Source: Thalia democratica (Eukaryota). From it: DNA of 64,000 nt. Below, in pieces: positions 3,655 through 61,643 of the stretch; the first letter of the stretch is position 1, and every line of letters begins with the position of its first letter. The notes under the pieces were generated by a model that ran no database searches, was not told the DNA's origin, and saw only the letters and a program-made list of their open reading frames with translations. A program made the position numbers and the translations under genes. The DNA lies in assembly GCA_965202585.1 (NCBI GenBank), contig OZ241828.1, positions 4,464,001 through 4,528,000 of the forward strand, given 5' to 3'.

Positions 3655-4368
3655 TTATTTCTGATGAGTAAGCAAATGCCTATTTCTACTGGAACTTTGC
3701 GTAAATCTTCTTCCACAAATATCACATCTAAACGGTCTATCACCAGTGTGAATTCTGATATGAGTGTTTAAACTATGTTTTTGTGTAAATCTTCTTCCAC
3801 ATATATCACATCCAAATGGTCTATCTCCAGTGTGAATTCTATTGTGAGTGTTTAAACTTGATTTCAGTAAAAACTTTTTTTTGCAAACTTCACATTCATG
3901 AGGTTTTTCTTTAGTGTGAACCAACATGTGACGATTCATTACAAATCTTCCTGCAAACTTCTTCTGACAAACATCACATTGAAACTCTTTCTTACCATTA
4001 TGTATCAACATGTGTCTTGTCAAGCTAGATATTTGTGTAAAACATTTATCACACTGTTCACATTTAAAAGGCTTATCATCAGTGTGAACTATTGCATGTT
4101 GTTTTAAATTACTTCTTTTGGCAAAACATCTTTTGCAAACATCACATTGATAAATCTTCAAACCAGAATGAGTGAGCTGATGTTGTGTCAAATTACTTTT
4201 CTGAACAAAACTTTTATCACAAACATCACATTTATAAGGTTTTTCTCCTGAATGAATTCTTTTGTGACGAATCAGGTGAGATCTATTTATAAAACTTTTT
4301 CCACAAATATCACAAACAAGCTGTTTATTATTGTTTGAAAACTTTGAGCTAGTTTGAGCAGTATTCAT
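3655..4368 (-). CDS. C2H2 zinc-finger protein, 8 fingers, intact (ZF locus 1)
   Basis: ORF 3655..4449 has 8 complete C-x2-C-x12-H-x3-H fingers. Likely start is MNTAQ at 4368, because paralogs start at the equivalent Met and an acceptor (ttttctag) lies just upstream. Ends HQK-stop like its paralogs. Confidence 0.93.
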   Translation of the reverse strand: MNTAQTSSKFSNNNKQLVCDICGKSFINRSHLIRHKRIHSGEKPYKCDVCDKSFVQKSNLTQHQLTHSGLKIYQCDVCKRCFAKRSNLKQHAIVHTDDKPFKCEQCDKCFTQISSLTRHMLIHNGKKEFQCDVCQKKFAGRFVMNRHMLVHTKEKPHECEVCKKKFLLKSSLNTHNRIHTGDRPFGCDICGRRFTQKHSLNTHIRIHTGDRPFRCDICGRRFTQSSSRNRHLLTHQK

Positions 4369-5324
4369 ACTTTTACAACTAGAGCTAGAAAAATATTTTA
4401 AATAGTACTGAAAAGTTTGAATAGAAATAAACCTGGTATATATAACCATTTAGACAATACATTTATGTAATTTTTTTAAAAAGGAAACTAAAACCAGTAG
4501 ACTCTCAATTAAATTAATTGAAATATATAATATAATTTATATACACAAAAATTTCTAGTATAAATATCTTAAATCTATTCTTAAACAGAAAAATATGTAT
4601 AAACAACTGTTTAAATGTTTGAGTATACAGGTTATTCAGAGTTATAAACATAACATAATCAAACTTTCACAAATTTTGAAAACTTGTTTCTTGCTTACCA
4701 AGATTAGCTTATTAAAATTAATTTGATGGCTCTATATTAATTATAATATTATTTTTTTATTTTATATAATAATTATAAACAAAACTTTTTGTATTAAATA
4801 TAAATTTATTAGTTATTTGTATGATAAACGTTTATAGTTAAATGCAATATAGAATACACTATTTTAAAAAGTATATTTTTATTAGTTTATTACTTATCTT
4901 TATGAGCATAAATTATTGATGTATTGACATTGTAGTCTAAAAAAATTAAAAACTAACTTTTTATTTTCATAACTCGGATGTTACAAGGTATCTTAACTTT
5001 TAAAATGTCGCTTAAGTTTAAAAAAAAAAAACTGAGAAAACAAAATATTCAGAGCATATTTTACACTATATTAAATTTACAGGGTTCCTTTTTTTTTAAA
5101 AGTATAAATTACATCATTCACAAAAAAAAATAAATTAAAATTATTCAATTAAAACAATAAGTTTGATTTGTATTCATTTAGATTTTATTTTATCATACAA
5201 GTTAATTAATAATTATAAAATAGGAAAAATTTTTAGAAGACAAAACTTGTAAACTCTCTATTTCAATAGCAGAGAGTTGCAATATGTTGAGTTTAGTCTT
5301 TAGTTATAGATATAAATACAACAT

Positions 5325-6335
5325 TCACTTATTATAGATAGTAAATTTAATAAGTTTTGTTGTTACTGATAGTTAAGGAGTTAAAACTAAATTTGAATTA
5401 TTACCAAATTTAAAAACTTGTTATAGATTTTTTTATCATAAAAATAATTTTTTCAAACAGACAACACATTAAGAGCTAATTAGTTTAAAATTTAACAAAA
5501 ATTAAAATTTAGGTTATTGTGTTGGAAACATTTCCTTTTATTTCATAAGTATTTATAAACTTACTAGCCTATTTTCAAACAAAATAAATACCATAGGTGA
5601 CTAAAAGTACTTTGATATTTTATAATTTATCGTGTTTAAGTATGTTTAATTTTTAGTTAATCTACTTATAATTTAATATTTTAAAGGTATAACTACAACG
5701 AAAATTAAATAGCATTAAATAAAATTATATTTACGACGGTTGTAGTAAGATACTATTTGCCCAATAAGAATATTTTATTTTAATCAAACTATATTAAATT
5801 GTAAAAATTATTAATGTCGAGAAAATCCGCTTAAAAAAAAGTTTTTGCTAATATTAAACGCGACACATTTTAATTTTTATTTGAAGTACAGTCAACTAAA
5901 TACTTTTACTGTTCTTAAAATTTAAAGACACTTCAAAAAGGTTATTATACATTGGCTAGCTTAAAAAATAAAGGTAAAACCGTTTATTTTGATTGTAATG
6001 TTTTAATTTTAAGAAAAATAATTTGTCAACAACATCTTATAACATATTTTACACCTTGATCGTTATTACTTAAATATAAATTTTTCTTAGCTGTTTGTTG
6101 GACAAAACAACAAAATTTAAAAACGGTCATCTAAATAGTTATAAAAATTTAAATTTCAATATGTACAAAAACTGCTTAACAACATTTAAAAACTATTTAT
6201 CAGCAAAAAGTATTTTAAATTACTTAAGTACTGTAATTTAAGTTAAAGTATCTTTTATTTCAAACTAATTTATTTAAATAGTTTAATTGTTTCACTAAGC
6301 ATCAAGTTATATGATGTATAGCTACTATAATAATC
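5325..6335. repeat. Upstream module, copy B, about 1-2 kb 5' of ZF locus 1
   Basis: Colinear with 32925-33965 over about 1 kb: aggttattgtgttggaaaca, ccataggtga, gaaaatccgct, aaaaccgtttatt, ttgatcgttattac, tatagct-ctataataat. Confidence 0.85.
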
Positions 6336-8629
6336 TTATTTTTTTAAGATATTAAAAAATTATTAATTTAAAATAATAATGTAAAATACTAACAAGCTTG
6401 TGATGAAAATGACATATAGTTTCATAAAATAGTTTGTAAAAGTAACTAATAGCATTTAACTAGCGTTTAATCTAATAATTTATCAATATATATTTATATT
6501 ATATAATTATATTATATTAATTAATTATTTATAATTATATTTATATTGTAAATTCTAAACATTTATTGCAGATACTTTTTAAACTATAATTCTTTTTTTT
6601 TGTAAATCATTACTAATAATATGTAAAGGAAGTTTTATCTTATTAATATTCTAAATCAATACAAAAACTATTACAAAAACTGAGTTATATATTTAAAAAA
6701 TGTTTTCAAATGTAAAAGTTTTTCAAATTTTAGAATATAATCGTAATAACTTTTATCTTTTTGATTTTGTTAAAAATAAAAACTAAATTTAAAACTTAAG
6801 TTTATTAAATATAATTTAATACTTAAAAACTTACTTGTTATCACAGTACACTTAGTAATATAAGTTGTTCGAAATTAGTTCAGCAGTATACTTTAGCAAT
6901 TAACATTATCAAACTTAAAAATTAATGCTTTCTAAACTTCTGTAAAAATATTATCATATAAAGATTATTTTAATGTTAGCTAAAGCACCTGAACACAACA
7001 TTAAAACTATACAGTGAAGAGGTATTTTTAAAGATATTACTTTAAAATTTAGTAACGAAAATAAAGTAATTAAAGTAAGTTAATCTTTTTTTAAAGCAAA
7101 ATGCAACAAACAACTCAATTTTATATCTCTATGACAAATAACTGCATTTGGATGTAGATAAAACTATGTTTTTACATGTTAACTTTAACAAAATATTTTA
7201 TAACTAAATATTGAGCTAAATATTTCACAAATATAACAAAAACAAAAGATAATAGAATATATAGTTGAGTAACGCCATTTTTGGAACTAGACCAATATCA
7301 TGAAAATTATACCAATGATGTCAATTAAACAAGAGATACTTAAAATATTACAACAAGAACCTTTTAAAGTGTATGATCGCAGTATAAGTCGCTGTTGGTA
7401 AAATTCATGAAATTTTAATGTAAAATTAAAATAAAGTAGTTTAATTATTACCTTAATAATTTTTCTTAAAGTTTTTGAATTCTTTTGATATAAATGTTGT
7501 ACTAAATACGTACTTTAAATTTTTTAGTTATCGAATACTAATTTTCGTGATCTATGCTTTAAACCAACTGTTTTTAAATTCACATACTATTTCGTTAAAA
7601 TTTTATGACTTTTGATTTTGTTTTTCAATCAAGGGGCTCGTCAAAATTGATATACAAACACTAAATTTAAAGCTTCTTTTAAATCTTAAAGCAAGTGTTA
7701 CTTTTTATTTTATAAACTTTATACTAAAAACTAATCATTTTGTATCTTTGATTTAATTATTTTGTAATATTCTTCGAGGTATTTATTAAAGCAAAATAAA
7801 ATTACAAGATTTATAATAAAACTATTTACAGTAAAAACTATCTTTAATAATTTAATAAAGTAAACTAAAAATAAAAAACTAAAACTATAAGCGCCATTAT
7901 TTTCTAGCCTTTCATTACTTTTTCACATTAACACACAAACTCATTTCATGTATATCAATATTAATATAACTGTATTAATAAATAACCTTTAGTTATTTGT
8001 ATTTTACATATTTTTTTACAAGCCACTTTTTGTTCTTATACATTGTTTTGTTTTTTACTAAACTTTTTACTATATCTCTCTTACTCTTTTATTTGTTAAT
8101 TTTCTAGTTTGAATGATAGGTCAAGTTAGATAGATCAGATACCCGTGCTTTTTACCTACTACGCCGAATAGATTAATATAGAGGATAACTACTCCAGGTT
8201 TAAGCTTGGCACAAAACCTTGTTGATTTATTTTTTAAATTTTAACTTTTATATTGAACACAAGTTCGTAATTCATAATATTTTTCAAAAATTTGTATATT
8301 TTTTTTAACTTTAACACCTTTCTGCTCTTTTCTAAAGCAATATCTTATTATCTACTTAGAATAAAATAAAAATCTAGCTAGATCTCGAAAAATTTAGTAG
8401 TAGTTTGCAGTTTGAAACATAATTTTTTTCTTTTAAGCTCGTTATAAAAATATTTTGGTTTTTTATTACTCAACATGTATAAAAATTAAGCAATCAAAAT
8501 CTACCTACTGTAGTATAAACTTTACGTCTTTACTGTAAATTAGATAAAAATCTGAGATGATATTCTTATGCTTTTTCATACATCAAAAAAGTTTTGCAAC
8601 TTAGAAATAACTTATCTGAGTATGTACTA

Positions 8630-9644: not shown

Positions 9645-11376
9645 ACGGGTGGGTGTTAGAATGACAGAGAGAAAAAATGACACGGTGTGTCACTTTGGCA
9701 CAGCAACAAATGACACGGTGTGTCACTTTGGCACAGCGACAAAATGGCATGTGCGTCACCTTGGCACGGTGCGTCACTTTGGCACGGAGTGTCACTTTGG
9801 CACGGCGACAAAATGACACGGTGCGTCACTTTAGGACAGCGACAAAATGAGACGGTGCTTCACTTTGTCACAGAGGGTCACTTTGAAACAACGACAAAAC
9901 GACACGGTGCATCACTTTGGCACAGAGGATCACTTTGGCACAGCGACAAAACGACACGGTGCGTCACTTTGGCACGAAGGGTCACTTTGGCATAGCGACA
10001 AAATGACACACGTCACTTTGACACAGCGACAAAATGACACAGTGCGTCACTATAGCATGGATTAACAAACTTATAAGCAAAACTTAACTTCTTTAGTAAT
10101 ATAACTTTTATTTGTAAAATTTTGATAGTAAATAGTTAAACAAAATATTTATTATACTTTTTCTAAACTATAGTAGCTTGATACATTTGAAACTATATAT
10201 GATACAATGCTTTAAAATTTAAGTCATAGTATAAAAACAAAAATATTCTTAAGTTTTATTTTTTACGTTTCACGAATTTTCATATTTATGTAATAGGTAA
10301 AATTTAGTACTTTTTGTCAAACGTTTAATTAATTATTATCAGGAATTGTTATAAAAAATAACTAACATTTAATTTAACACAGAGTTATTTCGTTCTAAGA
10401 ATAATTCATGCGTGTTTTAACTCTAGTTTTTAAAAATACAGAGTTAAGCTGCTTTTGAAGTAACTAGCCAGTTATATTAAATATGTTTTATTATTTAACC
10501 TAGTAGTTTGTTAAACATAAAAATTTTTTTTACTGTTTTTTAAACGACGAAAGGTTATCGCTCGAAAAGTTATATTAAAGAACATTTCAGTTGTTAAGTC
10601 GTAAATCACATGCTTTAAAAATCTATTACGAGCAGTTAAAAATATTTTTTTTTAATGTTAAGTCCTAAATTTCCAAAAACATACAAAAAAATTTTCAACA
10701 AAAGTTAATAAGTTAGGATGTTTACTTAAAACTCTGTATTGAAAATGTATAACAAACTTGTCTAAAAGCAAATAATTAAAATAAACAGTCCTGGAGCCTA
10801 AATTTATACAAAACTAAAAATAGTAATATTAACAATTGAGAGAAAATTAAGAGACTGATGAAACCATTCATGCGCATTTATATATTGATCACTTTTAAGA
10901 AAATTAGGCACTAGAGGTTATACAACTTAAGTCCTAATAAATCACAATTAGTTGTTCTTAAAAATAGTGTATTAAATGTTAAGTTTATTGTCAATTTAAT
11001 TAATTCTATTAAAGTTAATACTCTAAGTGTTTTTTTATTTTTACCAAACTTTGTAGCCTAAAATATAAAGAATTTAACTTAAGAGTATGACAGATATTAT
11101 AATATTTATTATAATATTACAGTACGTGTTTCATTTTATTTTATGAAGTCACAATTAAAAATTCCTGCGGTTTTTGTTTTTAAAGTTGATCAATGTGATT
11201 GTTGCTGATTCTACAAAACCGGTTAGAAGACAGGAAACCGAAAAGTGATGCACCGTGCTAAAGTGACGCACCGCGCCAAGGTGACGCACCGTGCCTTTTT
11301 GTCGCAGTGACAAATTGACGCACTGTGTCTATTTGACGACCGTGTCAATTTGTCGCTGTGTCATTTTGACCCGCTT
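9645..11376. mobile_element. Non-autonomous Mutator/foldback-like DNA element with internally repetitive TIRs
   Basis: Left arm 9647-10052 and right arm 11240-11378 are inverted copies of the same modular repeat. An exact 9-bp direct repeat CCGTCTTAC flanks it at 9636-9644 and 11377-11385. The AT-rich interior has no ORF. Termini are uncertain by about 2 bp. Confidence 0.72.
9660..10052. repeat. Modular tandem array, 14 copies of a TCACTTTGGCAC-type core in 17-18 bp and 33-34 bp units
   Basis: Units such as aaaatgacacggtgcgtcactttggcacagcgac, interleaved with shorter ggtgcgtcactttggcac subunits, are directly visible. Confidence 0.92.
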
Positions 11377-11472
11377 CCGTCTTACTAGGCTTATAAATAA
11401 CGTCATACATTATTATATACGTCACTAAAGTCTAGCAAATTAGAAATTTCTTTTCTGAATGTATATTTCATG

Positions 11473-12375: not shown

Positions 12376-12980
12376 TTAGTAATAATTAAATTTAAAGCTA
12401 GTTTTTCTATAAAAAAAAACATCACAACTAAATGGTCTATCTCCAGTGTGAATTCTAATGTGAGTATTTAAACTTGATTTCTGTGAAAACTTTTTCTTAC
12501 ATATGTTACTCTCATGAGGGTTTTCTTTAGTGTGAGTCAACATGTGACGCTTTAGAGTACTACTTTGAGTAAACTTCTGCAGACAGACATCACAATGAAA
12601 ATCTTTCTTACCACTATGTATCAACATGTGTGTTGTCAAACTAGATTTTAGAGTAAAACACTTGTCACACTGTTCGCATTTAAATGATTTATTGTCAGTA
12701 TAAACTACTGCATGTAGTTTTAAACTACTTCTATGTGAAAAGCATCTTTTACAAACATCACATTGATAGATCTTCAAACCAGAATGAGTAAGCTGATGCT
12801 GTGTTAAATGACCTTTTTGAGCAAAATTTTTGTCACAGATTTCACAACTAAAAGGTTTTCACCTGAATGAACTCTTTTGTGTGTAAGTAATGCAGACTTC
12901 AATTTAAAGTTTTTTCCACAAGTATTACAAACATGTTGTTTTGAATCATTCAAAAGTTTTAAGCAGTGATCAGAATTCAT
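12376..12980 (-). pseudogene. C2H2 zinc-finger pseudogene (ZF locus 2)
   Basis: Starts MNSDHCLKLLNDSKQHVCNTC at 12980. A 1-nt deletion in the GEKP linker (about 12856-12860), His-to-Tyr in finger 3, Cys-to-Ser in finger 6, and the last finger truncated after CDV at about 12419. Confidence 0.85.
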
Positions 12981-17714: not shown

Positions 17715-18332
17715 TCATTTTTGATGAAGGTGCAAATGTTTATTCCTAGTTGAAAGCTGAGTAAATCTTTTTCCACAAACATCACATCCAAAAGGTCTAT
17801 CTCCAGTATGAATTCTGATGTGTTTGTTTAAATGGACCTTTTGAGAAAACTTCTTTTTGCAAATATCACATTCATGAGGCTTTACCTTAGTGTGAGTCAA
17901 CATATGTTGTTTTAGATTACCTTTTAGATTAAATTTTTTTTGACAAACTTCACAACAAAAATCTTTCTTACCACTATGTATCAACATGTGCGTTGTCAAG
18001 TTAGACTTTTGAGTAAAACATTTGTCACACTGTTCACATTTAAAAGGTTTATCATCAGTATGAACTACTGCATGGGTTTTCAAATGACTTCTTCGTGCAA
18101 AACATCTTTTACAAACATCACATTGATAAATCTTCAAACCAGAATGAGTAAGCTGATGTCTTGTCAAACTATTTTTCTGTGTAAAACTTTGTTCACAAGT
18201 ATCACATTTGTAGGGTTTTTCTCCTGAATGAATTCTTTTATGGGTAATTACTGCTGAAAAACACTTGAAAAATTTCCCACATGTATCACAGACATGCTGT
18301 TTTTTAACATTTAATGACTAATTAGTATTCAT
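17715..18332 (-). pseudogene. C2H2 zinc-finger gene, 7 fingers, single in-frame TAG at codon 5 (ZF locus 3)
   Basis: ATG AAT ACT AAT TAG, then open to the stop at 17715 with 7 intact fingers. The TAG is at 18318-18320. It could be functional if a different 5' end is used. Confidence 0.7.
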
Positions 18333-21300
18333 ACCTCAAATTCCAAAAGCACCTAATAAAAATATACTACTATTACTTGAAAGAAAATTAATCCAAAACA
18401 TTACTTATTTTATTTCGTTACTACCTAAATATAAATTTTAGTTTACTAGGTTATAAAAATATAATTTAATTTAAAAAAAAAAGAAATGACATTTTGTGTA
18501 GTTTAATTATCAATTACATTTCTTGTAGCTAATAAACGAATAAAAAATAATAACTTTATCAGAAAAAAACGCTGCAAGTTATATCAACAAAACTATAATT
18601 AATTGTTTATTTTGGTAATGTTTGTTTAAGTTTTAATGTTAACACTAATAACTAATTTGCTTTAATTGTTATTAATATGGCTTTATTCTTTTCGATTATT
18701 TAATTACTTAATCTTTATAATTTGAAGAGAGATTCGTAAGAAGAAAGTAATCAACATTAATAATAAAAGATAATTGGTCACGTAGTGCTAGAAAAAAAAC
18801 TTCTTCAATTATAATACTGACTAAAGATTAATCAATAGCTGTTTATTTGAATAACCAGTCAAGAACAATATAAAAAGTAAAAAATAAACTATTTGGGTAA
18901 CTATTTACCAAACAGTTTACATTTAACCTACTTTATTTAACAACATAGAAAATCAACGACTCGAAGTTAATTTTTTTACCTAACTTTTTTTTAAAATATA
19001 AGTCAATAATTTGTTTGCTTTAGAAAATTTCATATAAATATTTTGTTCTCGCTTAAAATATATGTTAAAAAGTTGTGTACTGTGTAATTTCTAAATTTTA
19101 GATTACAGTAACATGTACAGTTTTATGTTTATATATATTGAACGTCTTCTAATTAAGCTTAATACTGTAGATCAAGTTAAAAAAAATTACAAAACACATT
19201 TATAATAAAGTATAGAATTGTAAAACTTTAGTCTTTAAACTAATTAGATACCAAATTATAATATTTGGAAGAATTGAAATCTAGTCTACAAAACTTTAAA
19301 CAAAAAATACTTTACTGCTTTTATTTGTGCCTTCCGTTATTCATAGATTGCAACTTATTAGTACAGTCTACAGGTTGAAAAAAAAAAAATCTACTAAGTA
19401 AATAATGTGTTAGCAGTTTAGATCAATAACAAGTAAATGATTATTTATAGTACTCAGATAAACATTGTCTATTGTAATCTTACTATCTTTTTTTACCTTT
19501 AATATTAAAAAAAACTATACTTCTTATTATACAAAACTTTAATCAAATAAAAACTATGTTGGTACTATTCGTGTTCTACTTATCACTACCTGTTTTATTG
19601 TACTATCGTTATAGTGATTTTCAAAAACGGAACTCATGATATTTTTAATTTACGTTGTGCTATAGTTTAATGAGCTCTAGTAACAAGTTATTCCAAAACA
19701 TTTTGTATAAAAAATTGTATGTGATTAAGATACGGCTGAGACAGATAAAACCTCTAGCTAAACTTTTTGAATATAGTAAGGTCAAATGGGACAATTTGAA
19801 AATAAACATGCTTATCAGTTAATCTCAATGGAAAAGAAACGGAAACTTTTTCAAATTATATTTTCATTTTGTTTTTCACTAGGTAGATTAACAAATTTTA
19901 AAATAGTAATCATAAACTATTATAATAAAGAAAACTTTCAGGTTATTATAAAAGCAGTTAGTATAAGTCACAATTTTACACAACATCAACTACAATTACA
20001 AATTTACCAAAAAATAGTTTATACCAAATAATTTATAAAATTAGATTACTTATATTAATTACAAATTCAGAACTAGCAATTTTTGAGTTTCTTTATATGT
20101 CTTTTTTTTTCTAGAATTTTTAATTTTTCTAGAAATATAGGTGTTATTACTTTGAATCTTAATAAGCACTATAACATACAAACTGTAAATTTTTAAAACG
20201 ACTCATACAAATAGTTATATTGTCAGTTCTATAGTTAAGTTTAATTTTTGATGTTAACGTAAATATCTGTTCTTATGAGATCTGTCAACAAATCTTCTTT
20301 CAAAAACATCACACGCAAAAGATAAGACAATTATAAATTCAAGTTCAAGTTCATAAAAGATGTTGAAAGGACTAATATTTATTTTTAAAACTAAAATATA
20401 CTTGAAAAGTATAAAAACATTGGTTGTAGGCTAATTGATAAGATTATGTAGCAAAAAAATATACAATAATTTATAATAAGATTATTTAAGAAATATATCA
20501 AAAATTTAAATTTGAACTTATTTTAACAATATATTTAAGTCAAATATTTTATATGTTTTACAAAATTTTCCGTTAATAAATAATTGATTAAAATTGCATA
20601 AAAATAGGTTTTTTAGAAAAAAAATTTATTAAAAAGTATATTTAAAAGCAATAAAACTTGTAGAAATTGAATTTTCGTGTTAATGTGTGGCCATCTTTTT
20701 TGTAAAACTTTGCACGAAAAAAAATCGAAATATGTTTTTTTACAAGTAAATTTTGTTGAAACTTTTGAATAATTTTTTTTTAATATTTTTCAATGTTCAC
20801 TGTTCAGTACATACTTATAAAGAAGTAAATTTATAAACTAACCGTTTTAAGACTTTTAAAAATAGTCATACTTCGTACAGATTGTATTGATATATGAATT
20901 AAAATATATTAAGATAATACTAAAATTCATTGCAGTTCATTTAAACAATCTAAAAAAGTGCAATCAAATTAGTAAATTTAGTAGTGGCATACTTCTGTGC
21001 ATAAGTTTATATAAAACAAACATTACCACTGGTCTAAATTTACTATCTTTAGACTTTCTATAGACAAAAATTGCTTGTAATGTTTTTTTTTTTTAGTCAT
21101 TAAACAACTTATTAAAAAGTTAATCTAATTAAAAGTTAATTAAATTTGTATGAAATAAATAATAAGGTTGGTGTTCAGTCTTAAAAAAATGTTCTAGTAC
21201 TAACGAAAAAATACGAAGTATAGATTGATTTTAAATTTTAGAAAATCAAACTATGAAAAATACAAATTACATACTAGATATAGCGTTTCAAGTTTTATTT

Positions 21301-40440: not shown

Positions 40441-40485
40441 AAATCTTCTTTCACAAACATCACATCCAAATGGACTATCTCCTGT
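40441..40485 (-). pseudogene. Isolated zinc-finger fragment (ZF locus 8)
   Basis: The reverse strand encodes TGDSPFGCDVCERRF, i.e. the family's last linker and the N-half of the terminal finger. Confidence 0.7.
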
Positions 40486-42240: not shown

Positions 42241-42888
42241 TCATATAGAGTCGTTATTTTTTTGATGATGAGTACGCAAATGAGTGTTTCTATGTGAACT
42301 CTGAGTAAATCGTCTTCCACATACTTCACATCCAAATGGTCTATCTCCAGTGTGAATTCTTATATGCTGGTTTAAACTTGATCTTAGAGAAAACGTTCTC
42401 ATGCAAACTTTACATTCATGAGGCTTTTCTTTAGTATGAGTTACCATGTGTTGATTTAGATGAGCTTTTTGAGAAAACTTCATCTGACAAACTTCACATT
42501 GATAATCTTTCCTACCACTATGTGTCAACATGTGTGTTTTTAAATAATGTTTTAGAGTAAAACATTTGTCACACTGTTCACATTTATGAGCTTTATAATC
42601 ATTATGAACAACAGAATGCCGTTTTAAACTACTTCTTCGTGAAAAACATCTTTTACAAACATCACATTGATAAATCTTCAAACCAGAATGAGTAAGTTGA
42701 TGTTGTGTTAAATTACATTTTTGTGCAAAACTTTTGTCACAATCATCGCATTTGTAAGGTTTTTCTCCGGAATGAATTCTTTTGTGATATATCAGGTCAA
42801 AATTTCTTTTGAACACTTTCCCACAAGTTTCACAAACAAGTTGGTTTTTATGTTCTAATAATTCTAAGTCACCTTTAGTGTTATCCAT
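42241..42888 (-). CDS. C2H2 zinc-finger protein, 7 fingers, intact (ZF locus 10)
   Basis: 215-aa ORF with 7 complete fingers and a short extra tail (NNDSI). Acceptor gtattcag 25 nt upstream of the ATG. Confidence 0.94.
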   Translation of the reverse strand: MDNTKGDLELLEHKNQLVCETCGKVFKRNFDLIYHKRIHSGEKPYKCDDCDKSFAQKCNLTQHQLTHSGLKIYQCDVCKRCFSRRSSLKRHSVVHNDYKAHKCEQCDKCFTLKHYLKTHMLTHSGRKDYQCEVCQMKFSQKAHLNQHMVTHTKEKPHECKVCMRTFSLRSSLNQHIRIHTGDRPFGCEVCGRRFTQSSHRNTHLRTHHQKNNDSI

Positions 42889-45290: not shown

Positions 45291-46002
45291 TTTGTTAGCT
45301 CAAATAAAAAACTGTAATAGGAAAAGTTTTTTGGTAAAACTTTACAACTAGAATATTACTTGTTAATTACAGTCACCTCTTGAGAACCTACGCACATTTT
45401 GTCTACAGTACACTTATAAAACATTGCCTATTCCTAAAAAATTACTATTAGTTTGTTTATTTATCTTTTTTTGTGTATAACATTTTTTTTGAATTTTGAT
45501 TTGTTATAAAACACTTATTATAAAATATTTAGTACTAGTCATAAGACATTTTTCAAGTGTTCAGCTACTGTTTCATCTACTAGAAAAATATTAAGAAACC
45601 TTAATTACTTCTCAAATAGTTGTTAAAATTTAAAAAGACAAGAAACATAGCTAAACTTAATAAATAACAACTTAAGTTGGAGTAATTTATATATACAATT
45701 TATCTATAATTAGTTTTGAGCGATAAGTATTCACAACCAAAAAAGTTATTAAAAAGTTAAAAAAGCAGTCATCTAAAATAAGTGACATATTTGAAGCATT
45801 GTTTTCTGTAAACATACTAATTGATGAAATAAACAGTATTTCTTCTAACTTATCGTATTACTGTAGTGAAAACTTTAACTAAAACTATAATATTAATCAT
45901 TTTTTTATGTAAACTTATACACAGTAAAATCAAAACTTGATTAAATATATACTCGACAAATCACATAAACAATTATGTTTCTATTCGTGATCAGTTTTAT
46001 TT

Positions 46003-46621
46003 TTAATGAATACGCAAATGTTTGTTGAACTTGCTGTAAATCTTTTTCCACAAACATCACAACCGAACGGTCTATCCCCAGTATGAATTCGAATATGTTT
46101 GTTTAAGTGAGATTTTTGTGAAAACTTCTTTCTGCAAGTGTTACATTCATGAGGCTAATCTTTGGTATGAATCAACATGTGCCGTTTTAGACTACTATTT
46201 TGACCAAATTTCTTTTCACAAACATCACACTGAAAATCTTTTTTACCACTATGTATTAACATGTGTTGTGTCAAACCTCATTTAAATGCAAAGTATTTAT
46301 CACACTGTTCACATTTAAATGTTTTATTGTCAGTGTGAACTATGACATGCTGTTTTAAATGACTTCTTCGTGAAAAACATCTTTTGCATACGTCACATTG
46401 ATAAATCTTCAAACCAGAATGATTTAATTGATGTCTTGTTAAATCACCTTTTCTAGCAAAATTCTTGTCACAAATTTCACAACTAAAAGGTTTTTCACCT
46501 GAATGCAGACTTTGTGAGCAACCAATGCAGACTTAAATTTAAAACTGTTTTTACAAGTTTCACAAACATACTGCCTAGAAGCATTTAAATTTTTTGAGCT
46601 AGTTTGATCACTATTTACCAT
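46003..46621 (-). pseudogene. C2H2 zinc-finger pseudogene (ZF locus 11)
   Basis: Starts MVNSDQTSSK. Frameshift at about 46502-46512, TGA at 46278-46280, TAG at 46155-46157, a deletion in the terminal helix, and TAA at the Gln of HQK. Confidence 0.92.
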
Positions 46622-49298
46622 TATTACTTCATAACAAACAAACTGAAACTATTATAATTAGTCGTTAAAAAAACAAATATAAATAAATTTTAGACATAAA
46701 ATAAAAATTAAAGTATTTTGTAGTTAACTCAAAACGATATTTTGAAACTTTACTTAAGTTATACATTTATTTTTTATAAGATTCTTTCTTTGAATTTAAG
46801 TAACTTAACATGATGTTACTGCTAAAAAAATATAATTTTTTGATAATAAATTGTTTTAAGAATTTTAATTGTATGTCAATAACCTCATTATTCTAAAATC
46901 TAATAATTGAAAACAGTGTTACTTTCTTTTGTTTAAACTAAGATTTAAGTTTTTCAATGGCTTTTAATTCCTTGTCTTTTAAACGTTTATGTCGAAAAAA
47001 AGAATTTGTTTTAAAGATGCTTTAATTGTAAGTATTATAAAATATTTACGTGTTGTTTTGCTAATATAGAAAAATTATTTTTATATCTATAATCCTAAAA
47101 TATTTTCTATAAATGATAAACTTAACTTAAAAACTGAATTTAGAAGAATAAAAATTTTTAAATCAGTTGATATGTTATATTTAATTTTGTTTAAAAAACC
47201 TTTAAAATCTATTTTTAAATTTTAAACTAACATGCAATACAGAAATTAAACAAACATTATAGTTGGGCTATTTCAGGGAAGTAGCTAGCTCAAAAAAGTT
47301 ACGAATCTGCAAAATAAAAATCAAGAATAATGTGTGATGACGTCATAACGGGAATAAAGTAGTTTTAACTACCTTTAATTTTATATGAAATTGTGCAGTT
47401 TTGTTAAAAGTTTAAAATAAATAGAATGTTAAAGTATAATAAAAAATTGATTACCAGGCAAGTTGTACTGCTATTGACCCCCTATAGTTATTATTGTGTT
47501 GAACTTTAATGAGCCTATAAAACGTTTCATTAAAAAAAAATATTGATTAAGAAACTAACGTTAATAGTATTACTGATAGGCCTTAAATATATAACTTTAA
47601 AAACAGTTTCTCCACTTCAGAAAAGATTTGCAAAAATTTTTGCTTTTATTGATTTAAAAATCAAAAATTTTAAGAGTTAAATAAAAAACAAAGAGGATAT
47701 AAAATAAAACAGTTCGCAACATTAGATAAAATTTAGATGTACAACTACTTTATTTTGTCAAAAATAACTCACATAGAACGGAAGAATACACGTCTTTGTA
47801 AATGTTATTACTAGCTTTGGTAGCATAAAGAGTTGAGCTGTAAAAAAAGAATAAAACATTTTGTTATTAAAATAAAATTCTTAAATAGAAGTTGTAAACA
47901 GAATCAAACTTTTTTTTTTACAAAACAAACTTGTTAAATAAAACAACTCAGTTAAAAGACACAAACCTTGAATGTTAAACATTAATATTTTTTAGATACA
48001 ATGTGAAACATATAAATAAATTCAAACATAAAGGTTTTTAAACATAAAATATATTATTTTTTTTTTTTTAAACTTGTTATGAATTTATAATACAACTATA
48101 AACTAGTTAAAAAAATGTTACTAATTTAATCTTTATAATCTTAGATTTAATAAGTTATATAAAATTTATTTTAAAATTTTTTATCATTTATCGAACATAA
48201 ATTAAAGAATTAAACTGATATTTTTTTCAAATTTAGTAAACCACTCTAAAATTTATAAACTTATTTTAAAACAACAGATACAATCCATATTCTTTATACA
48301 TTTAAAGAAAATATATAACACAAAAATCTTTATATTGTAAACAACAATGCTTGTAGAAAAATAAAATTTACAGTAATATTTAAAAACAAGTTGAAACAAA
48401 CTTTGTATTTTACATAGTTGTCTGAAAACATCATTGAAAAAGCTTATATCTTGAAATACTTATCTAGAACTCATTGTAACAAACTACACTTGAGTTTGAT
48501 TGACTTTGTTAATAGCTTTGAGTTTAAATGGCATCAAGTGGATGGTTTTACTTTCAAATGATATTTGCATAATTTTAACCTTAGTAAACTTAACTTTTAA
48601 ACTTAGTTTGAAAAATCTGTGAAACAACTAGATTTGTTAAAATCCACACATAGTGTACCAAGTTTACAGTAGTAATACAAATAAAACTCAAAAACAATTT
48701 TCAAAATGTAAAGCCAACTAGAAAATACAAATGTACTAACTTAAGGTTTTATAATTCTGTTAACTACTTAAAAATTGTTAATATAAAGATGAAAAAAAAC
48801 AGAGATAATGAAAAACCTTTGAAAGTTGGGAATAAAACCAAAAACTCTGAAAAAATTTTAATTTTCATTTAATAAAACAATATGCATAGAAAACAAACTT
48901 ATTGTAAACAAATGATATAATAATACAAGTAAAATAGGTATTAACAACAGCTCTACCCTATGACCAACACCAGTTCCAGGATTTTGTTTTTGAATTTATC
49001 TTCTTATTTTTGAAATAAGACTAACTTTTCAAATTTATCAATGTTTTTTTTACAAAACTGGTTATAAAATAAAAATTCATTAAAACTAGCTAGCAAAATC
49101 TCATTCAAAAATGGAAAAATATCTGTTATGACATTATTAACAAACCTAAAATGTCCTTATTTTTTATAGATAAAAAAACCATACTGAGTTAACCTGAGTT
49201 CAAATATAAAAATCTAAATATCATAGAGTTATACAGAATACTTTGAGTGTTTTGGCTACAATGTACAATTTAAATCTTTTAACTTTGCTAAAAAATAC

Positions 49299-49480
49299 AA
49301 TAAAAACTTTAACTAAGGTAAGCATTTATAAAATCTTAAAACCAGTTTTAATTAAAAAATAAAGTTCTAAAATATAATAAAAACATTATAATTTGTTTAT
49401 ATTAATGTTGAAAAATAAAAACTTTAACTTACTTAGCATTTATAAAATCTTTGAAACAAGTTTTAATTAAAAAATAAAAT
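49299..49480. repeat. Local direct duplication, about 65-bp unit at 115-bp spacing
   Basis: aataaaaactttaact ... agcatttataaaatctt ... agttttaattaaaaaataaa occurs at 49299 and 49414. Confidence 0.8.
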
Positions 49481-50400
49481 CTGTTTATATTATTCTTAAA
49501 AAAATGTTTATTATTCAGTTTTTTAACTTTTCGTTTTGTTGCAAGCTATTTGTCGTATTGTGTTAGTTTTTCTGATTTAATAAATTATAATTTTCTTGAT
49601 AAAACTTCAGGAAATAAAATTATTATAATTTTTTAAAAAGTTTTTCATTTTTGTATATTTGTCAACCACAGGGATTTAATCTTAAAACGTTCAACTCAGA
49701 GAGTCAATTTGGTTTATAACAAAGGTTAATTCTTCATGTTACTTTACTTTTAGGTTCATCTAATCTAAAGATTATCTTTTCATATATCTTCTATCTGTAT
49801 TTGCTCTTTTGTAAGACAAAAAGTGTAAGTTTCAAAAAATGTAAAGTTCTATTTGACTCACAATAAACCTTTCAATAGTACAAAACTTACTTTTTTTTTT
49901 TATTCTCTCACATGATTTAAACCAAATCTACAGCCTCAAAATTGGTTTTTTTACAATAGCTTGCTTTAGATAATAGATTTTTACACCAAGCTATTTGTAT
50001 ACAATTAAATGTATTCAATTTGTTCAATGTTTACGACACTAAAAGTGCTAGAGAATCCGTAAAAATAAAATTATTTCTCAAGAGTGCAAAACTAAGTATA
50101 AACGAATACTTGAAGTTAAAGAAACAAGGTCTTAAAAGCTGAGTAATCGAAAGAAAAGCGAGTTTTTTCGTACAAACTTTTACGTTTCTGTAGATTTGCA
50201 CAAACGTACCAAGCTACGTATCTGGGCTATTTTATTAACATAAACGCTTCCTGAAATGGCAAAAAAATAAAAAGATCTTAAGCATAGTTTAATGGCAGTT
50301 TTTTTAGTTAGAAGGCAATTGCTTGTTTAGTTTTAAAAGGGGGTTTTTATATAATATATTTTTTGTAAACCCTGGTTTAATTTGTTACCCAAACTAAATT

Positions 50401-53400
50401 AAGTGTTTGAAGTCAGGCAGTTTAAAATAGAAAATACTACATAATAAACTTAATATAAAAATTTAATAAAACTTCACAATATTGTTATAAAATTAATTTT
50501 GTAATCAAGAAATTTATTAAAACTAGTCAGATTATCGTTATATATTTTTTACTTTTAAAATATTTTTACTACTTACTTTATGTTTTACTTTTTATTAATA
50601 AAAAATTTAAACTTTTTAGATATCTTGTTGCCGAGGTCTAAAAAGTTTTTTTGTTGTTTAATCAAACTGAAGTTTTTTACATAATAAATTTTTTTTAAAC
50701 TATTTTTTTAAGTAAATTGTATTTGTTTTTAATTAAGCTATGAATGTAGGAGTTTTAATTTTGGTTTTTTAATGTTATTGATAAACTTTATTAGCGTTCT
50801 ACTAAATGCGTTTAATTTTAAGGTTTACAATACAACTTTTAACTTAAGTTTTTGATCACTTGCTTTAGATATGTATTATATATATTTTCTTATTTATTAA
50901 TACTAACATTCTGAAGAATTATATTTTCTAGTATTCTTTTGTTAATTCTTTAATTTAGCCTATGTTTATACTTTGAAAAATTCAAGTTTGTTTTTTGATA
51001 TAATAAATCGATTAAAAAACTGTGACGAAAGACAAATTTTAACATGTATTAACTAAAACTTATAGAGCTATAAAAGGTAAACAATTATTATTAGTTTTCA
51101 TGATGGTAAAATATCATTCACAAATACTTTATAAAGACTTATATTTTTTGACTTAAAATGTATATTTTTAGAAGTTTAGAAAACTTAGTGTACTATAGAA
51201 ATAAAAACTTAAAGTATCTTTAAACCTCATGTTTGTGATATGTAAAAGATCAGTTAAATAAAAACATTTTCGAGGTATAAGGGGAATTCTTTAGGTGAAA
51301 CTTCATTAATTAACTCAATAACGAATTTATATCCATAACGATGAAAAGAGCTTAGTAGCTGTCTAAAAAGGTCTACTACTTAAGTATTAGACTCATTACT
51401 TTTTATATATAATCATGTAGTTTTTTAAAAGATCGACTTATACAATTAGATAACTAGGTAACTTAACAAACCTAAGCGTTTTTATTTATGTTTTTTAAAT
51501 AGTTTCGTTTTACTTTGGGTTTCACTAGTCTCAAACTATTTACTTTTTCAACAATTATACTTTTTTGAACTAGTTATAACAAATAATGAACTAATACTTT
51601 TAAAAGGTTACAATAATATTTATTTTGTTATTAACGTCGGCATTAAAAATTAGTTGTTAAATAACAGTAGATCTATTTAGAAATTTAACATTTTATATAT
51701 CGATTTGTTTATTAAATATGAGAAAGGCATAATAAAAAGAAAATTCGTAATATAGAGTTTAAATAGAATTAAGTTGTGTAGATCATCTACAATAATATTT
51801 ATTTTAAACAACGTTTATGGTTTTAATACTAATAACATAAATCGTTAAAAATGAACTAAAAACCAGTTAATAAAGGCTATTTGTAAAAAAAATGTATTGT
51901 ATTTAAGCGAAAACGTTATTGATAATTAAGTAATTTTTTCTATCAAAACTAAATAAGTTTAATTATAGCTTTTTTTAAGAATTCGTTTAATTTTAAATTC
52001 GTTTTGTTGATATTATTAATATACTTAATATTTTATTAAATAAAGCAGCATTACACGTAGATTGATTAAAAACTGTAAGAGTTGAGCGTTACGATATTGT
52101 TCGAGTGATAATGTAAGTTTTAAAACTCATAAATAACAAAGTTTAATTGGTTTCAATACCCATATACAAGTTTTTAAAAAATAAATTTTTAATTATTCAA
52201 AAAAACATGAAAAAAAACATGAAAAAAAACAGTATTTAATGAAAAATTTCGAATATTTTAACCACCTTTTAAAACTATGAAATATTAATTAAATGAAAAT
52301 GTTATTTAATAATGTTTTTTCAAGTACTTTTGTAAACATTAAAACTTGACCTACGCAATATTCAAATCAACTCGCGCCAACTAGTACAATTTCTGTTGTA
52401 GACGAAATTTAAACTTTATTTGAAACTCATTACTCTTTCCTTTTTGACTTTCATTTCCAAAAAAAATTATTTGTCCGGTTGGTCGGCAATTACGAGGAAA
52501 GATATTAATTATAGAGGTCTAAATTGTGAAATTTATTAGATGATTAACGAACATAGGTACTAAAAAATTTAGTACTTAATATATTTTGATGTTATAAACT
52601 TTATTAACTACATGTCGAATTAAAGCATATAATCATGTATTTGATTTTCATTTAACATAATAATTTAAAAATTATATAGTTATATTTTTGTTAATAACGA
52701 AAATAACTTAAAAATTACTTTTACTACACATGTTTTCACTATCCACAAAGTTAATAATGTTTTTTTTTTTGTTACAGTTTTAAACTACCTCATATTTTCA
52801 TTAACACAATTAGTTTTACTTTTCAAACATCACATTTAATCATGATTAATTAATTTATCTCAAACCCCAAACTATACAAGTTTTTATTTTCACCCCAATT
52901 TAAGTTTTAATCCATGTTTATGAAGTGACATAAAGCACAACTTTAAAGTCTTTTTTTACTGTAGAAAAACAAAAATATTTAAAGTTGTTCTTTTACACAA
53001 GTTAACATCATGTTTAATGTAAAAAGTAATGTTTCCTAAGGCTTCTGTGTAAGTTTTTACAAAATACATTAAATTTGAAACCAAAGAGTTTTTATCTTTG
53101 ATTAGTATGAAGTGTATGTTCCTGTTTGAACGACGTGAAAACTATTTGAAACAAACATCTTATCAAAATGGTCTATCACCAGCGTGAATTGTAATATGAT
53201 CATTTAAATTTGATTTTAAACTCCTTCTTGCAAAAACCACATTCATGAGGATTTGCTTTAGTGTGAAACAACATGTGTTGTTTTAAATGGCTTTTTGATT
53301 AAGATTAAAGATAAAACAAATGGTCTATCACCAGTGTTGTTTCTACTATGATTCTAATGTGTTCGTTTAAACTTGATTTGAGTGAAAACCTCTTGTTGCA

Positions 53401-53871
53401 AATGTCACATTTATGAGACCTATTTTTTGGATAGAGTAAACATGTGGTATTTCAAATGATTTTTTTGTTTAAAATGCTTCTCAAAAACTTCACACTGAAA
53501 ATCTTTCTTACCACTATGTATCAACATGTGTGTTGTTAAGTTTATTTTTAAAATTAAAACCTTTGTCACAAAATTCACAACTTAGTGGTTTGTCATCAAT
53601 GTAAACTAATGTAAAGGCTTTTAAATGAGTTCTATGAAAAAAAAACATTTTATAAACATCAAATTTATATATATTTAATCCAGAATGAGTTAACTGATGT
53701 TGGGTCAAAATATTAATCCTTTTGAAAGATTTTTCACAGATATCAAAACTGAATGGTTTTACACCAGTATGATCTCTTCGTGCCTAATAAGCAATGAATT
53801 CAATTAAAAAAATTTCCTACAAATTTCACAGACATGAAGCTTTTTATGATCAAAGTTGTAGCAGGATTCAT
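50401..53871. repeat. Segmental duplication unit (3' flank plus ZF locus 12), paralogous to 28537-31758
   Basis: Same ordered anchors as 28537-31758. The gene ends also match (MNPATT vs MNIATT; gaacgacgtgaaaac). Confidence 0.9.
53092..53871 (-). pseudogene. Heavily decayed C2H2 zinc-finger pseudogene with internal duplication (ZF locus 12)
   Basis: Multiple frameshifts and ligand losses. The finger 5-6-GDRPF segment occurs twice (about 53150-53310 and 53318-53480). Confidence 0.88.
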
Positions 53872-55307
53872 AATTGAAAATAGGCAAATAGATAATAAAA
53901 ATATTTCTTTTAGTTTTTTATTAAATACTGGGTAACAGCATCAAACAATTTTTTTATATTATAAGAATAAAAGCAGATAATGAAAAATGCAAAAACGACA
54001 CCTTGTGTGGTTCAAAACTATAATATATACTTATATTAACTAAAAAACTTATAAAACTAAACAGAATAAATATTAATAGTGTTAAAAAAAAAGAGAAAAG
54101 CACTTGACTGTTTTGCTGCAAACTATGTCAACAAAACTATTATTAAATTCTTTATTTTATTAAAGTTCGTTCAAGTCTTATTGTTTACTGAATACAATAA
54201 CACCTATTTTAGAAAATTAATTATTCATTAAATGGTCTTATTATTTTTCGACTGTTGGGGTATTTAGAGTTTTAATTCTTTAAGATAGCTTTGTAATTAG
54301 AAAGTAATTAATATTAATCATAAACGATAATTGATCACATACTGTTAGAAAAAGTAGATTAATCTTCAACTTAAACTTAAATTTTTTGATTTTAGATGAA
54401 GCAGTAACTGTTTATTTAATTGATCAGTTTGGATAAACATTTGTGTCAATAAAGTAATAGTTTTAGTAATTATTTTCTTACTAAGTTTAAAGTTGAGCTA
54501 CGTCTGTTATAAAGACGACTGTTGTTTAGGTAAATAAAGCGAAATGAAAAAAAATTTTTTTTTTTATTATCTAGTTGTTTAAAACTTTAAAAACCAATAA
54601 GTAATAAAGAAAATTTCTGTGCTTAATTTAAGATTTACATTAAAAAATGAAGTATTTCGTGATTAAAGTCTAAATTTAAATACAAATTATTAATAATTAA
54701 TTTAGAAGTTTTAATATATTGTCGTATTAACAAATTTTAAAGGTATATTTATTAAGCTTGATAATGCAGATCAAAATCAAACAAAATTATAACTATAATA
54801 TAAAACAGAATTAGAACTTCAGATTATCTTTCTAACAAGTAGTTAGATACTTGTGTTTAAATATTAAAAAAAAATAATAATTTTCAACCAAAACTTTCAA
54901 AATTTGAGTCCATTGAAAGGTGTATGTTCTTGTCATCTTTTTACTTTATGTTTGTTAACAATGTTGTACTACTATTAAAACAGAACTACGAAAGTTTAAG
55001 TTATATGTACGAAAGCTTCGTTAAAATTACAATGTTACACAATTATTAAATATATATATGGTTAAAAAAATATACATCAAACAATTTTTAGTAAAATTAA
55101 AGCATTATAATCATAACAAACTTATACATCTGAAAATAAATAACATTAAGTTTAGTTTAATGTGTCATTACTAAAACAATTGCAGCTATATAATATATCT
55201 GAATTTATAAATAGCATAACTTAGGAGCTTAATCAGCACTAAAACTAACACACTGCATTCGTAAACCGCTTATAGAAAAATAAAATTATCGATTCGATAA
55301 ATAAGTT

Positions 55308-55925
55308 TTATTTTTGATGGTTACGCGTATGTCTGTTCCTATGAGATCTATCTGAAAATCTTCTTCCACAAAGATCACATCCAAATGGTCTATCTCCAGT
55401 ATGAATTCTAATGTGAGTGTTTAAACTTGATTTCTGTGAAAACTTTTTCTTGCAAGTATCACATTCATGGGGCTTTTCTTTAGTGTGAGTCAACATATGG
55501 GATTTTAGATAAGCTTTTTGAGCAAAGTTCTTCTGACAAACATCACACTTTAAATCTTTCCTACCACTATGTATCGACATGTGTATTGTCAAGTTACCTT
55601 TACGGTTAAAACATTTGTCACACTGTTTGCATTTAAATGGTTTATTATCAGTATGAACTATTGCATGCTGTTTTAAATTATATCTTCGTGCAAAACATCT
55701 TTTGCAAACGTCACATTGATAAATCTTCAAAACGGAATGAGTAAGTTGATGTTGTGTTAAACTACCTTTTTGTGCAAAACTTTTATCACAAACATCACAT
55801 TTGAAAGGTTTTTCACCAGTATGAATTACTTTATGATTAGTCAGTTTTGAATTAAACTTAAAATTTTTTCCACAAGTTTCACAAAAGTATTGCTTTTTTT
55901 CATTTGAAGTCTGAGTAGTTATCAT
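55308..55925 (-). CDS. C2H2 zinc-finger protein, 7 fingers, intact (ZF locus 13)
   Basis: ORF 55308..55964. Likely start MITTQ at 55925, preceded by ttttcaag-c. Seven complete fingers. Confidence 0.93.
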   Translation of the reverse strand: MITTQTSNEKKQYFCETCGKNFKFNSKLTNHKVIHTGEKPFKCDVCDKSFAQKGSLTQHQLTHSVLKIYQCDVCKRCFARRYNLKQHAIVHTDNKPFKCKQCDKCFNRKGNLTIHMSIHSGRKDLKCDVCQKNFAQKAYLKSHMLTHTKEKPHECDTCKKKFSQKSSLNTHIRIHTGDRPFGCDLCGRRFSDRSHRNRHTRNHQK

Positions 55926-57395: not shown

Positions 57396-58028
57396 TCATT
57401 TTTGATGATAAGTACGCAAATGATAATTCCTACCTGAACTGTGTGCGAATCTTCTTCCACAAATATCACATCCAAATGGCCTATCGTTAGTGTGAATTCT
57501 TAAGTGTGAGTTTAAATTACCTTTATGTAAAAACTTCTCCTTGCAAACTTCACATTCATAAGGCTTTTCTTTAGTGTGAGTCATCATGTGAAGTTTCAGA
57601 TTATCATTTCGAGCAAACATTTTTCCGCAAACTTCACATTGAAAATCTTTCTTACCACTATGTGTCAACATGTGTCTTTTCAAGTCAGCTTTACGTTTAA
57701 AACTTTTACCACACTGTTCGCAACTAAACGGTTTGTCATCAGTGTGCACTATTTTATGCCGTTTTAAAGCATCGCTTGTTGCAAAACATTTATTACAAAT
57801 ATCACATTGAAAGATCTTTAAATCAGAATGAGTAAGTTGATGTCTTTTTAAATTACCTTCGTGTGAAAAACTCTTGTCACATTCATCACATTTGTATGGT
57901 TTTTCACCAGAGTGAACTCTTTTGTGACGAACTAATGCAGACTTGCACTTAAACTTTTTACCACAAGTTTCACAAACGTACTTAGTTTCATCCTTTAAAC
58001 TCATTGAGATAGTTTCATCAGTTATCAT
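57396..58028 (-). CDS. C2H2 zinc-finger protein, 7 fingers, intact (ZF locus 14)
   Basis: ORF 57396..58061. Likely start MITDET at 58028. Seven fingers, the last with H-x4-H spacing (HLRTYH). Confidence 0.93.
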   Translation of the reverse strand: MITDETISMSLKDETKYVCETCGKKFKCKSALVRHKRVHSGEKPYKCDECDKSFSHEGNLKRHQLTHSDLKIFQCDICNKCFATSDALKRHKIVHTDDKPFSCEQCGKSFKRKADLKRHMLTHSGKKDFQCEVCGKMFARNDNLKLHMMTHTKEKPYECEVCKEKFLHKGNLNSHLRIHTNDRPFGCDICGRRFAHSSGRNYHLRTYHQK

Positions 58029-61000: not shown

Positions 61001-61097
61001 ATAACACAATTCGAAAACACAATAAACATCACATAACTTAATATGTAACATCTAAATTTGAAGTAATTAAATACTCAATTAACTAGTTTATTATAAT

Positions 61098-61396
61098 TAG
61101 TTCACAGCGATAAATATTCATAAATTTACTCAACAAAAGATAAAGTGAAGTAAGCAGTAAAAGTGAGCAGTGAAGTTGGCCCTTAAACAACTCTTATATA
61201 ACAAGCTACATTTTTCGTACATATCATAACTTATCAAACAAATAATATTACTTAGCTAAGTATTTTTAGTTAAAATTACTGTAATAACAGCTTTACCAAA
61301 AATTCTTTTACAAATTATAAATAACATCTTATATGCAAACTTATGTAGAGTAAAATTAAAACGTTAGATTAATCATTAACTCAACAAATCCCTTAA
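61098..61396. repeat. 3' flank shared with ZF locus 14 (57072-57395)
   Basis: Near-identical to 57072-57395. Confidence 0.92.
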
Positions 61397-61643
61397 TCAG
61401 TTTTGTTTTTGATAAATACGCAAATGTTTATTCCTATTTGAACTCGTTGTAGATATTTCTCCACAAATTTCACATCCAAATGGCTTATCGTTAGTGTGAA
61501 TTCTTAAGTGTGCGTTTAAATTACCTTTATGTAAAAACTTCTTCTTGCAAACGTCGCATTCATAAGGCTTTTCTTTAGTGTGAGTCATCATGTGAAGTTT
61601 CAGATTACTTTTTCGAAAAAAAGTTTCAGATTATCATTTAGAG
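61397..61643 (-). pseudogene. 3' part of a C2H2 zinc-finger gene interrupted by a hAT element (ZF locus 15)
   Basis: Close paralog of locus 14 (HMMTHTKEKPYEC...FLHKGNLN-HLRIHTND). Homology stops abruptly at CAGGG 61644, within the finger 5 helix. Confidence 0.9.

Follow-up and report, generated by a model that had tools for sequence, protein, structure and literature searches.

Clustered families of C2H2 zinc-finger (ZF) genes have been described in several animal groups, among them the KRAB-ZFPs of tetrapods, the FiNZ-ZNFs of cyprinid fish and the ZAD-ZNFs of insects. Across animals, the number of such genes (ZNFs) tracks the retroelement load (PMC10547256). Poly-ZF expansions without KRAB, SCAN or BTB domains have also been documented (PMC2604467), with mollusc and arthropod expansions cited in PMC10547256, and a total of about 103 poly-ZF proteins has been counted in Ciona (PMC2604467). 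Here, we analyzed a 64-kb stretch of the 802-Mb genome assembly of the tunicate Thalia democratica (contig C4, positions 4,464,001-4,528,000; hereafter the window, in whose positions all locus coordinates are given). The long open frames of this very AT-rich DNA (23% GC) are all C2H2 ZF open reading frames (ORFs) on the minus strand and no other kind was observed. On balance, we tentatively read the window as a slice of a megabase-scale, almost single-chromosome tandem array of tunicate-lineage-specific, minimal ZF-only genes with diversifying specificities.

Zinc-finger loci of the window and their shared design

When the intact proteins were searched against the window by tblastn, 16 ZF loci (~1 per 4 kb) were identified, 14 of them substantial and two reduced to one-finger relics, with all 16 on the minus strand. 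An earlier note, made from the letters of this DNA, had listed 15 minus-strand loci; the common orientation stands, whereas the count becomes 16 with the two relics. Frame-by-frame reading sorted the loci into five intact genes, one start-less copy, one copy with a single stop and one with lost zinc ligands, the remainder being four multiply broken pseudogenes, two 3′ halves and the two relics. Give or take one relic, this reproduces the five intact and ten disabled or partial copies reported in the earlier note. A ciliate-type genetic code was ruled out as an explanation for the apparent stops because TGA, TAA and TAG all interrupt the frames, in addition to frameshifts. Clustering in the window is far beyond chance, as a 29-nt family signature located in finger 3 matched nine times compared to 0 matches in 100 shuffles. 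Nucleotide identity among copies is 70-83% and limited to the coding sequence; the flanks have diverged, save between recent duplicates. An Rfam scan of the window identified no RNA family.

Each gene appears to be a single exon encoding a protein of ~200-215 amino acids (aa) with seven (sometimes eight) canonical C2H2 fingers. Alignment of 24 intact genes, which was near gap-free, revealed a common plan consisting of a variable leader, then seven regular fingers, and then a stop codon two or three residues past the last His of finger 7. The leader differs from subfamily to subfamily and measures 10-18 aa from the ATG to the first Cys, so that the short leader described previously is confirmed but its exact range (12-20 aa) is not. 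The fingers are of the poly-C2H2 (Krueppel) type, i.e., tandem C-x2-C-x12-H-x3-H units separated by 7-residue H-to-C linkers, and in 20/20 intact genes the zinc ligands and linkers are unchanged with every H-to-C spacing canonical. Linkers are finger-specific and follow the order HSGEKPY, HSGLKIY, HTDDKPF, HSGKKDF, HTKEKPH and HTGDRPF. Two further parts of the scaffold deserve mention: finger 3 has a hairpin that is invariant in the 24-gene alignment, as well as a non-canonical linker, and finger 7 is atypical, with Arg-Asn at helix positions 4-5 where Leu-x is usual. The AlphaFold2 model of the protein encoded at 36492..37121 comprised seven beta-beta-alpha fingers (mean pLDDT of 81) and a disordered leader, with lower confidence at the finger 2-3 linker.

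An 8-finger sub-type carries 84-nt (one-finger) internal tandem duplications between fingers 6 and 7, which were located at positions 3696-3895 and 26556-26734 of the window. The extra finger of the 26.5-kb copy is common to a copy at C4:10.26 Mb, while that of the 3.7-kb copy looks like a separate finger-6/finger-7 hybrid. As the extra fingers appear to differ, the 8-finger sub-type arose at least twice.

Genome-wide extent and growth of the array

All genome-wide family counts given here are search tallies. With up to three mismatches allowed, the 29-nt signature produced 229 matches in the 802-Mb genome, almost all on contig C4, compared to 0 matches genome-wide for its reversed control. 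Because the signature marks 9 of the 14 substantial window loci, the 229 matches suggest that the genome holds roughly 350 family loci. On these tallies the 15-16 loci of the window are a sample of a family of at least 229, a scale that the earlier note underestimated. The best 150 matches of a genome-wide tblastn search with a single member all scored E<1e-63; C4 accounts for almost all of them, in three intervals (4.1-5.0, 7.4-10.8 and 21.4-21.7 Mb), and a few fall on C6, C5 and C333. No in-frame stop was present in 86 of these 150, and 64 had at least one. Among the matches listed, all of those at C4:4.125-4.692 Mb have minus orientation, indicating a co-oriented run of about 570 kb, and plus orientation is seen at 4.92-5.01 Mb.

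The closest sampled relative of each intact window gene lies hundreds of kb away, and non-coding blocks of several kb are shared within the array at 79-90% identity, which together point to growth by both tandem and segmental duplication. Synonymous divergence (dS) between duplicates extends from 0.03 up to about 0.6. This range, and the mixing of intact with dead copies, bears out the birth-and-death evolution proposed in the earlier note: the array grows by tandem and segmental duplication and loses copies through mutation and repeat insertion. Further along the same contig, tblastn detected a family pseudogene at C4:28.76 Mb, and a low-copy repeat of the window (5166-6358, described below) has six copies at C4:28.5-29.6 Mb; this region may be another, more degraded array.

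Evolution of scaffold and contact residues

Contact positions were defined as helix positions -1, 2, 3 and 6 of each finger. Shannon entropy was 2.03 bits at these positions and 0.64 at the other positions of the array, a difference that held for every finger. Nei-Gojobori estimates over all pairs (median dS 0.59) gave a ratio of nonsynonymous to synonymous change (omega) of 1.09 at contact codons and 0.23 elsewhere. When the comparison was made on seven phylogenetically independent sister pairs, contact omega was 1.01 (bootstrap confidence interval 0.82-1.25), and 0.33 was obtained elsewhere. Contact codons therefore evolve 3-5 times faster than the scaffold. In individual copies, the fold and linkers have long been maintained by purifying selection, and substitutions at the specificity residues accumulate at about the rate of silent sites, i.e., about neutrally. 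The combination of a constrained scaffold and variable contacts identifies these loci as genes under selection with diversifying specificity. Constraint at the nucleotide level was also considered for the near-invariant 29-mer of finger 3, and was dropped: its synonymous-codon identity (0.79 observed vs 0.46 expected) is matched by several other conserved segments.

Judged from this architecture, the proteins are likely to bind DNA sequence-specifically, reading about 21 bp and differing from one another in specificity. What they bind is a more speculative matter. By analogy with the KRAB and FiNZ families, and from the animal-wide correlation of ZNF number with retroelements (PMC10547256), it is possible, albeit doubtful, that the repertoire tracks fast-changing repeated DNA, i.e., transposons or satellites. 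Hypervariable DNA-contact residues fit such a repertoire with changing targets.

Several points weigh against an array of selected genes with diversifying specificities, and against its proposed targets. Contact omega is not significantly above 1, and relaxed constraint accounts for the variability no less well than adaptive change. Intact copies are only about a third of those in the window. Neither target predictions nor binding data tie any member to a transposon, the repeat insertions within the array are co-occurrence and not evidence of function, and a search of sequencing runs found no RNA run holding the locus. A hidden effector, which is considered in the next section, is a further point of this kind.

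First among the alternatives, and in our estimate rather unlikely, is that these are ordinary lineage-specific transcription factors for host genes with no special relation to transposons. Factors of that kind would present the same structure (canonical fingers, a scaffold under purifying selection and variable specificity residues), nothing ties the genes to repeats, and most pairs are old (dS about 0.5-0.6), which leaves no very recent arms-race burst to be explained. However, hundreds of near-uniform paralogues with contacts changing at the neutral rate and many pseudogenes would be unusual for factors embedded in a regulatory network, and the pattern resembles that of families shown elsewhere to target repeats (PMC10547256). 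The array could instead be largely neutral or selfish, inflated by unequal crossing-over, with few members that matter and contact variability reflecting no constraint. A contact omega that is about 1 and not above, 10 or 11 dead loci out of 16 in the window, stops in 64 of the best 150 genome matches and no expression evidence would all suit such an array. It is nevertheless improbable, since a non-contact omega of 0.23-0.33 over many independent pairs signifies long selection on individual copies, and zinc ligands and linkers are invariant in 20/20 intact genes.

Search for an effector

A Pfam search of four intact proteins (E≤0.01) matched C2H2-type models only (zf-C2H2 / zf-H2C2_2 at E 1e-36 to 1e-60), with no KRAB, SCAN, BTB/POZ or ZAD (PF07776) domain detected. 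Conserved coding exons were detected neither in the 1.45 kb preceding each of 24 genes, searched by blastn and tblastx, nor in any intergenic space of the window, searched by tblastx with low-complexity masking off. The upstream similarities that were seen consisted of proximal 5′ flanks of 40-500 nt within subfamilies and of segmental duplicates that are non-coding, every frame containing stops; the upstream and intergenic searches yielded no block that was both free of stops and common to different subfamilies. The repeat at 5166-6358 and similar upstream repeats were rejected as hidden exons because all of their frames are full of stops. Together with the short leader, these negative results argue against a conserved N-terminal exon in the style of KRAB, ZAD or FiNZ. 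The earlier note had described proteins of fingers only and had suggested a profile scan of the proteins and upstream exons; with C2H2 models alone in Pfam, a short leader, a stop right after finger 7 and no conserved stop-free upstream exon, its description holds.

The sequence immediately before the coding region shows some conservation of its own. Most start codons have A at -3, and stretches of 40-120 nt before the ATG are conserved within subfamilies (e.g., 37122-37160 and 55926-55965), one subfamily having the block TTACAAGGTTTATG...ACA-ATG; these may be a core promoter, a 5′ untranslated region or a trans-splice acceptor. Tunicates use spliced-leader trans-splicing, and AG dinucleotides occur after T-rich tracts within 40 nt upstream of many ATGs. 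Both observations would accommodate a repressor function supplied from elsewhere, either through an unconserved or distant 5′ exon or by a separately encoded adaptor. We consider such a hidden effector highly unlikely, as the searches above recovered no conserved stop-free block in the 1.45 kb upstream of the 24 genes or in the intergenic spaces of the window, many ATGs have an in-frame stop just a few codons upstream, and the intact gene at 55308-55925 is separated by only 1.4 kb from the next gene upstream.

For a repertoire of fingers-only proteins as favored here, the lack of an effector domain would imply action by occupancy or competition. Alternatively, a partner might read invariant parts of the scaffold, such as finger 7, which is conserved but atypical, or the hairpin of finger 3 together with the non-canonical linker of that finger. 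The most far-reaching version of this proposal, in which a tunicate independently evolved several hundred minimal, ZF-only, effector-less genes that police repeats by occupancy or through a separate adaptor reading the scaffold, is unlikely to hold in full.

Relatives in public proteins and metagenomes

The nearest named proteins are generic arthropod poly-ZFs with 37-46% identity, whereas the paralogues are 57-88% identical to each other; clustered and closer to one another than to proteins of other taxa, they have the properties of a lineage-specific poly-ZF expansion. Among the public proteins searched, no annotated protein elsewhere has the family scaffold. Two proteins do share it, including a segment with HSGLK-(I/T), and are encoded on contigs of Tara Oceans plankton metagenomes. 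To the extent that public proteins can tell, the family is thus restricted to one lineage, in line with the earlier note. A profile search of 1.84 billion representatives returned 246,335 matches that were swamped by giant poly-ZF proteins and so uninformative on close relatives, and an ESM Atlas look-up returned generic C2H2 clusters only.

Near-identical 31-mers were present in a marine metagenome run. When DNA-like contigs were placed on 54801-60800 of the window, coding-sequence bins were 20-100 times deeper than their flanks, a pile-up common to the source organism, a second labelled organism and a marine metagenome. Contigs labelled as the second organism span all 6 kb of this segment, including the intergenic DNA, at ~90% identity, which indicates that the expanded family is also present in a related species or population. 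As for the source genome itself, mitochondrial COX1 (contig C1833) uses AGR = Gly and TGA = Trp, i.e., the tunicate mitochondrial code, and its motifs GGFGN, HLAGVSS and GGGDP read correctly only if AGA/AGG = Gly. The best matches to this COX1 were marine catalogue entries with 88-92% identity. Several nuclear COX1 copies (numts), degraded and rich in stops, are located on C4 (including 56.84-56.94 Mb) and on C757.

Individual loci and interspersed repeats

The five intact genes, like all ZF loci described below, lie on the minus strand. The first (3655..4368; tblastn span 3658-4449) is a ZF-only gene of 237 aa with eight fingers, its extra finger being derived from an 84-nt internal duplication, and an in-frame ATG further upstream at 4449 would give 264 aa. 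The other four have seven fingers and encode 209 aa (36492..37121; span 36495-37145), 215 aa (42241..42888; span 42244-42942), 205 aa from the ATG at 55925 (55308..55925; span 55299-55973) and 202 aa from the ATG at 58004 (57396..58004; span 57393-58064). The gene at 36492..37121 has a paralogue 320 kb away that is 88% identical, with upstream DNA that is 84% identical.

Three copies are close to intact. The start-less copy (17715..18347; span 17706-18434) retains a 200-aa open frame with seven well-formed fingers, but a stop interrupts its leader and no ATG is left; it was probably disabled recently. The second copy with eight fingers (26511..27233; span 26514-27251) is disabled by one in-frame stop at 26970-26972. 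A decaying copy (31123..31758; span 31126-31773) still has a 211-aa open frame, in which zinc ligands have been lost from fingers 1, 3, 6 and 7 and the tail is aberrant.

The pseudogenes and fragments display more extensive damage. One pseudogene (12391..12980; span 12391-12962) has a frameshift between fingers 1 and 2, a finger 6 without one Cys and a truncated finger 7. Another contains several stops and frameshifts (22506..23226; span 22506-23215), a third has frameshifts and in-frame stops (45993..46645; span 46017-46633) and the fourth is heavily degraded (53073..53882; span 53073-53845). A 3′ half comprising fingers 5-7 is present without its 5′ part at 40979..41288 (span 40979-41284), and a 3′ remnant extending from the end of finger 5 to finger 7 lies at 61400..61633 (span 61400-61771), its 5′ part having been cut off by a young repeat that starts at 61634. 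The one-finger relics found by tblastn, at 20245..20319 and 40423..40491, each correspond to the last finger.

Three dispersed repeats are interspersed with these loci. The element at 9648..11380 has copies on all large contigs (86-91% identical elsewhere; 4786 first-look candidates genome-wide) and GC-rich, inverted terminal or subterminal arrays of 17/34/52-nt subrepeats. In these arrays (9653-10067 and 11242-11375), a short GTCACTTTGGCAC-type motif recurs at 17/34/52-nt spacing, with opposite orientation at either end, and the arrays resemble sets of binding sites for a transposase. No ORF for a transposase was found inside the element, and given its inverted terminal arrays it looks like a non-autonomous DNA transposon. 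The second, at 47274..50225, is an unclassified repeat of ~2.95 kb with copies 84-89% identical, in which neither terminal inverted repeats (TIRs) nor ORFs were found. The third (61634..64000) extends past the end of the window and belongs to a family with more than 7000 first-look candidates; recent activity is probable, given the 95-97% identity of its copies. The start of this repeat (61634-61790) is GC-rich with five copies of GGCCCGC, against the 23%-GC background. The earlier note had described interleaved DNA transposon relics: dispersed repeats are indeed present, but features of a DNA transposon were confined to 9648-11380. A fourth, low-copy repeat of 1.2 kb (5166..6358) is non-coding, occurs at 17 places (71-83% identical) only within the zinc-finger cluster regions of C4, and is part of the duplicated unit rather than an exon.

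The very high copy number and uniform units might suggest that the ZF ORF is itself part of a transposable element or of a satellite unit instead of a host gene, an idea that can practically be dismissed as similarity ends at the coding-sequence borders with no shared termini, the copies occupy a few blocks of one chromosome whereas the true repeats of the window match all contigs, and the copies are under purifying selection.

Comparison with known systems

If repeats are the targets, the family would add an independent, non-vertebrate chordate example and so extend the idea that ZF diversification follows transposon load. It would also raise the question of how silencing could be achieved by a fingers-only protein, and in the effector-less version would be a KRAB- or FiNZ-like defence built on a different principle. 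As its variation is limited to 28 positions, the rigid 7-finger scaffold lends itself as a library for work on recognition codes. In presenting the effector-less expansion as a new principle, however, the earlier note went too far, as non-KRAB poly-ZF expansions are documented (PMC2604467, PMC10547256).

The tetrapod KRAB-ZFPs (chromosome-19-type) resemble the tunicate family in forming large tandem clusters on one chromosome, in turning over by birth and death, in combining a conserved finger scaffold with -1/2/3/6 residues that are hypervariable, and in having pseudogenes and repeats in between. They differ in having a KRAB domain, usually on separate 5′ exons, whereas the single-exon genes described here have no KRAB and no N-terminal exon was found for them. 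Finger arrays are also highly variable in the tetrapod proteins, in contrast to a finger number fixed at seven (or eight) in the tunicate. A further mark of the KRAB-ZFPs is the recruitment of TRIM28/KAP1 and H3K9me3 at transposons.

The FiNZ-ZNFs of cyprinid fish (Wells et al. 2023, PMC10547256) likewise number hundreds of lineage-specific copies of a single subfamily, have an origin independent of KRAB and are a proposed transposon-repressing repertoire. They are defined by a conserved N-terminal domain, in place of which the tunicate proteins have 10-18 variable residues; judged by this absence of a conserved N-terminal segment, and without use of a FiNZ profile, the tunicate family falls outside the FiNZ class. 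Positive selection, expression at zygotic genome activation and derepression upon morpholino treatment are described for the fish genes (PMC10547256). The ZAD-ZNFs of insects are comparable as a lineage-specific, clustered C2H2 expansion in an invertebrate, yet possess the ZAD domain (PF07776), through which the proteins dimerise, and no such module is present in the tunicate proteins.

The best fit is provided by the ZF-only poly-ZF expansions (Emerson & Thomas 2009, PMC2604467), which share the lack of an accessory domain, restriction to one lineage, clustering and diversification of contact residues. Compared to these, the tunicate has at least 229 loci of one family, against about 103 poly-ZF proteins of all kinds in Ciona, and an unusually rigid 7-finger design with finger-specific linkers and a contact omega of about 1. 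Overall, the family is a further lineage-specific poly-ZF expansion and not a new kind, and its evolutionary pattern is as expected; its distinctive features are a size that is unusual for a tunicate, the rigidity of the 7-finger scaffold and proteins that lack non-finger sequence completely.

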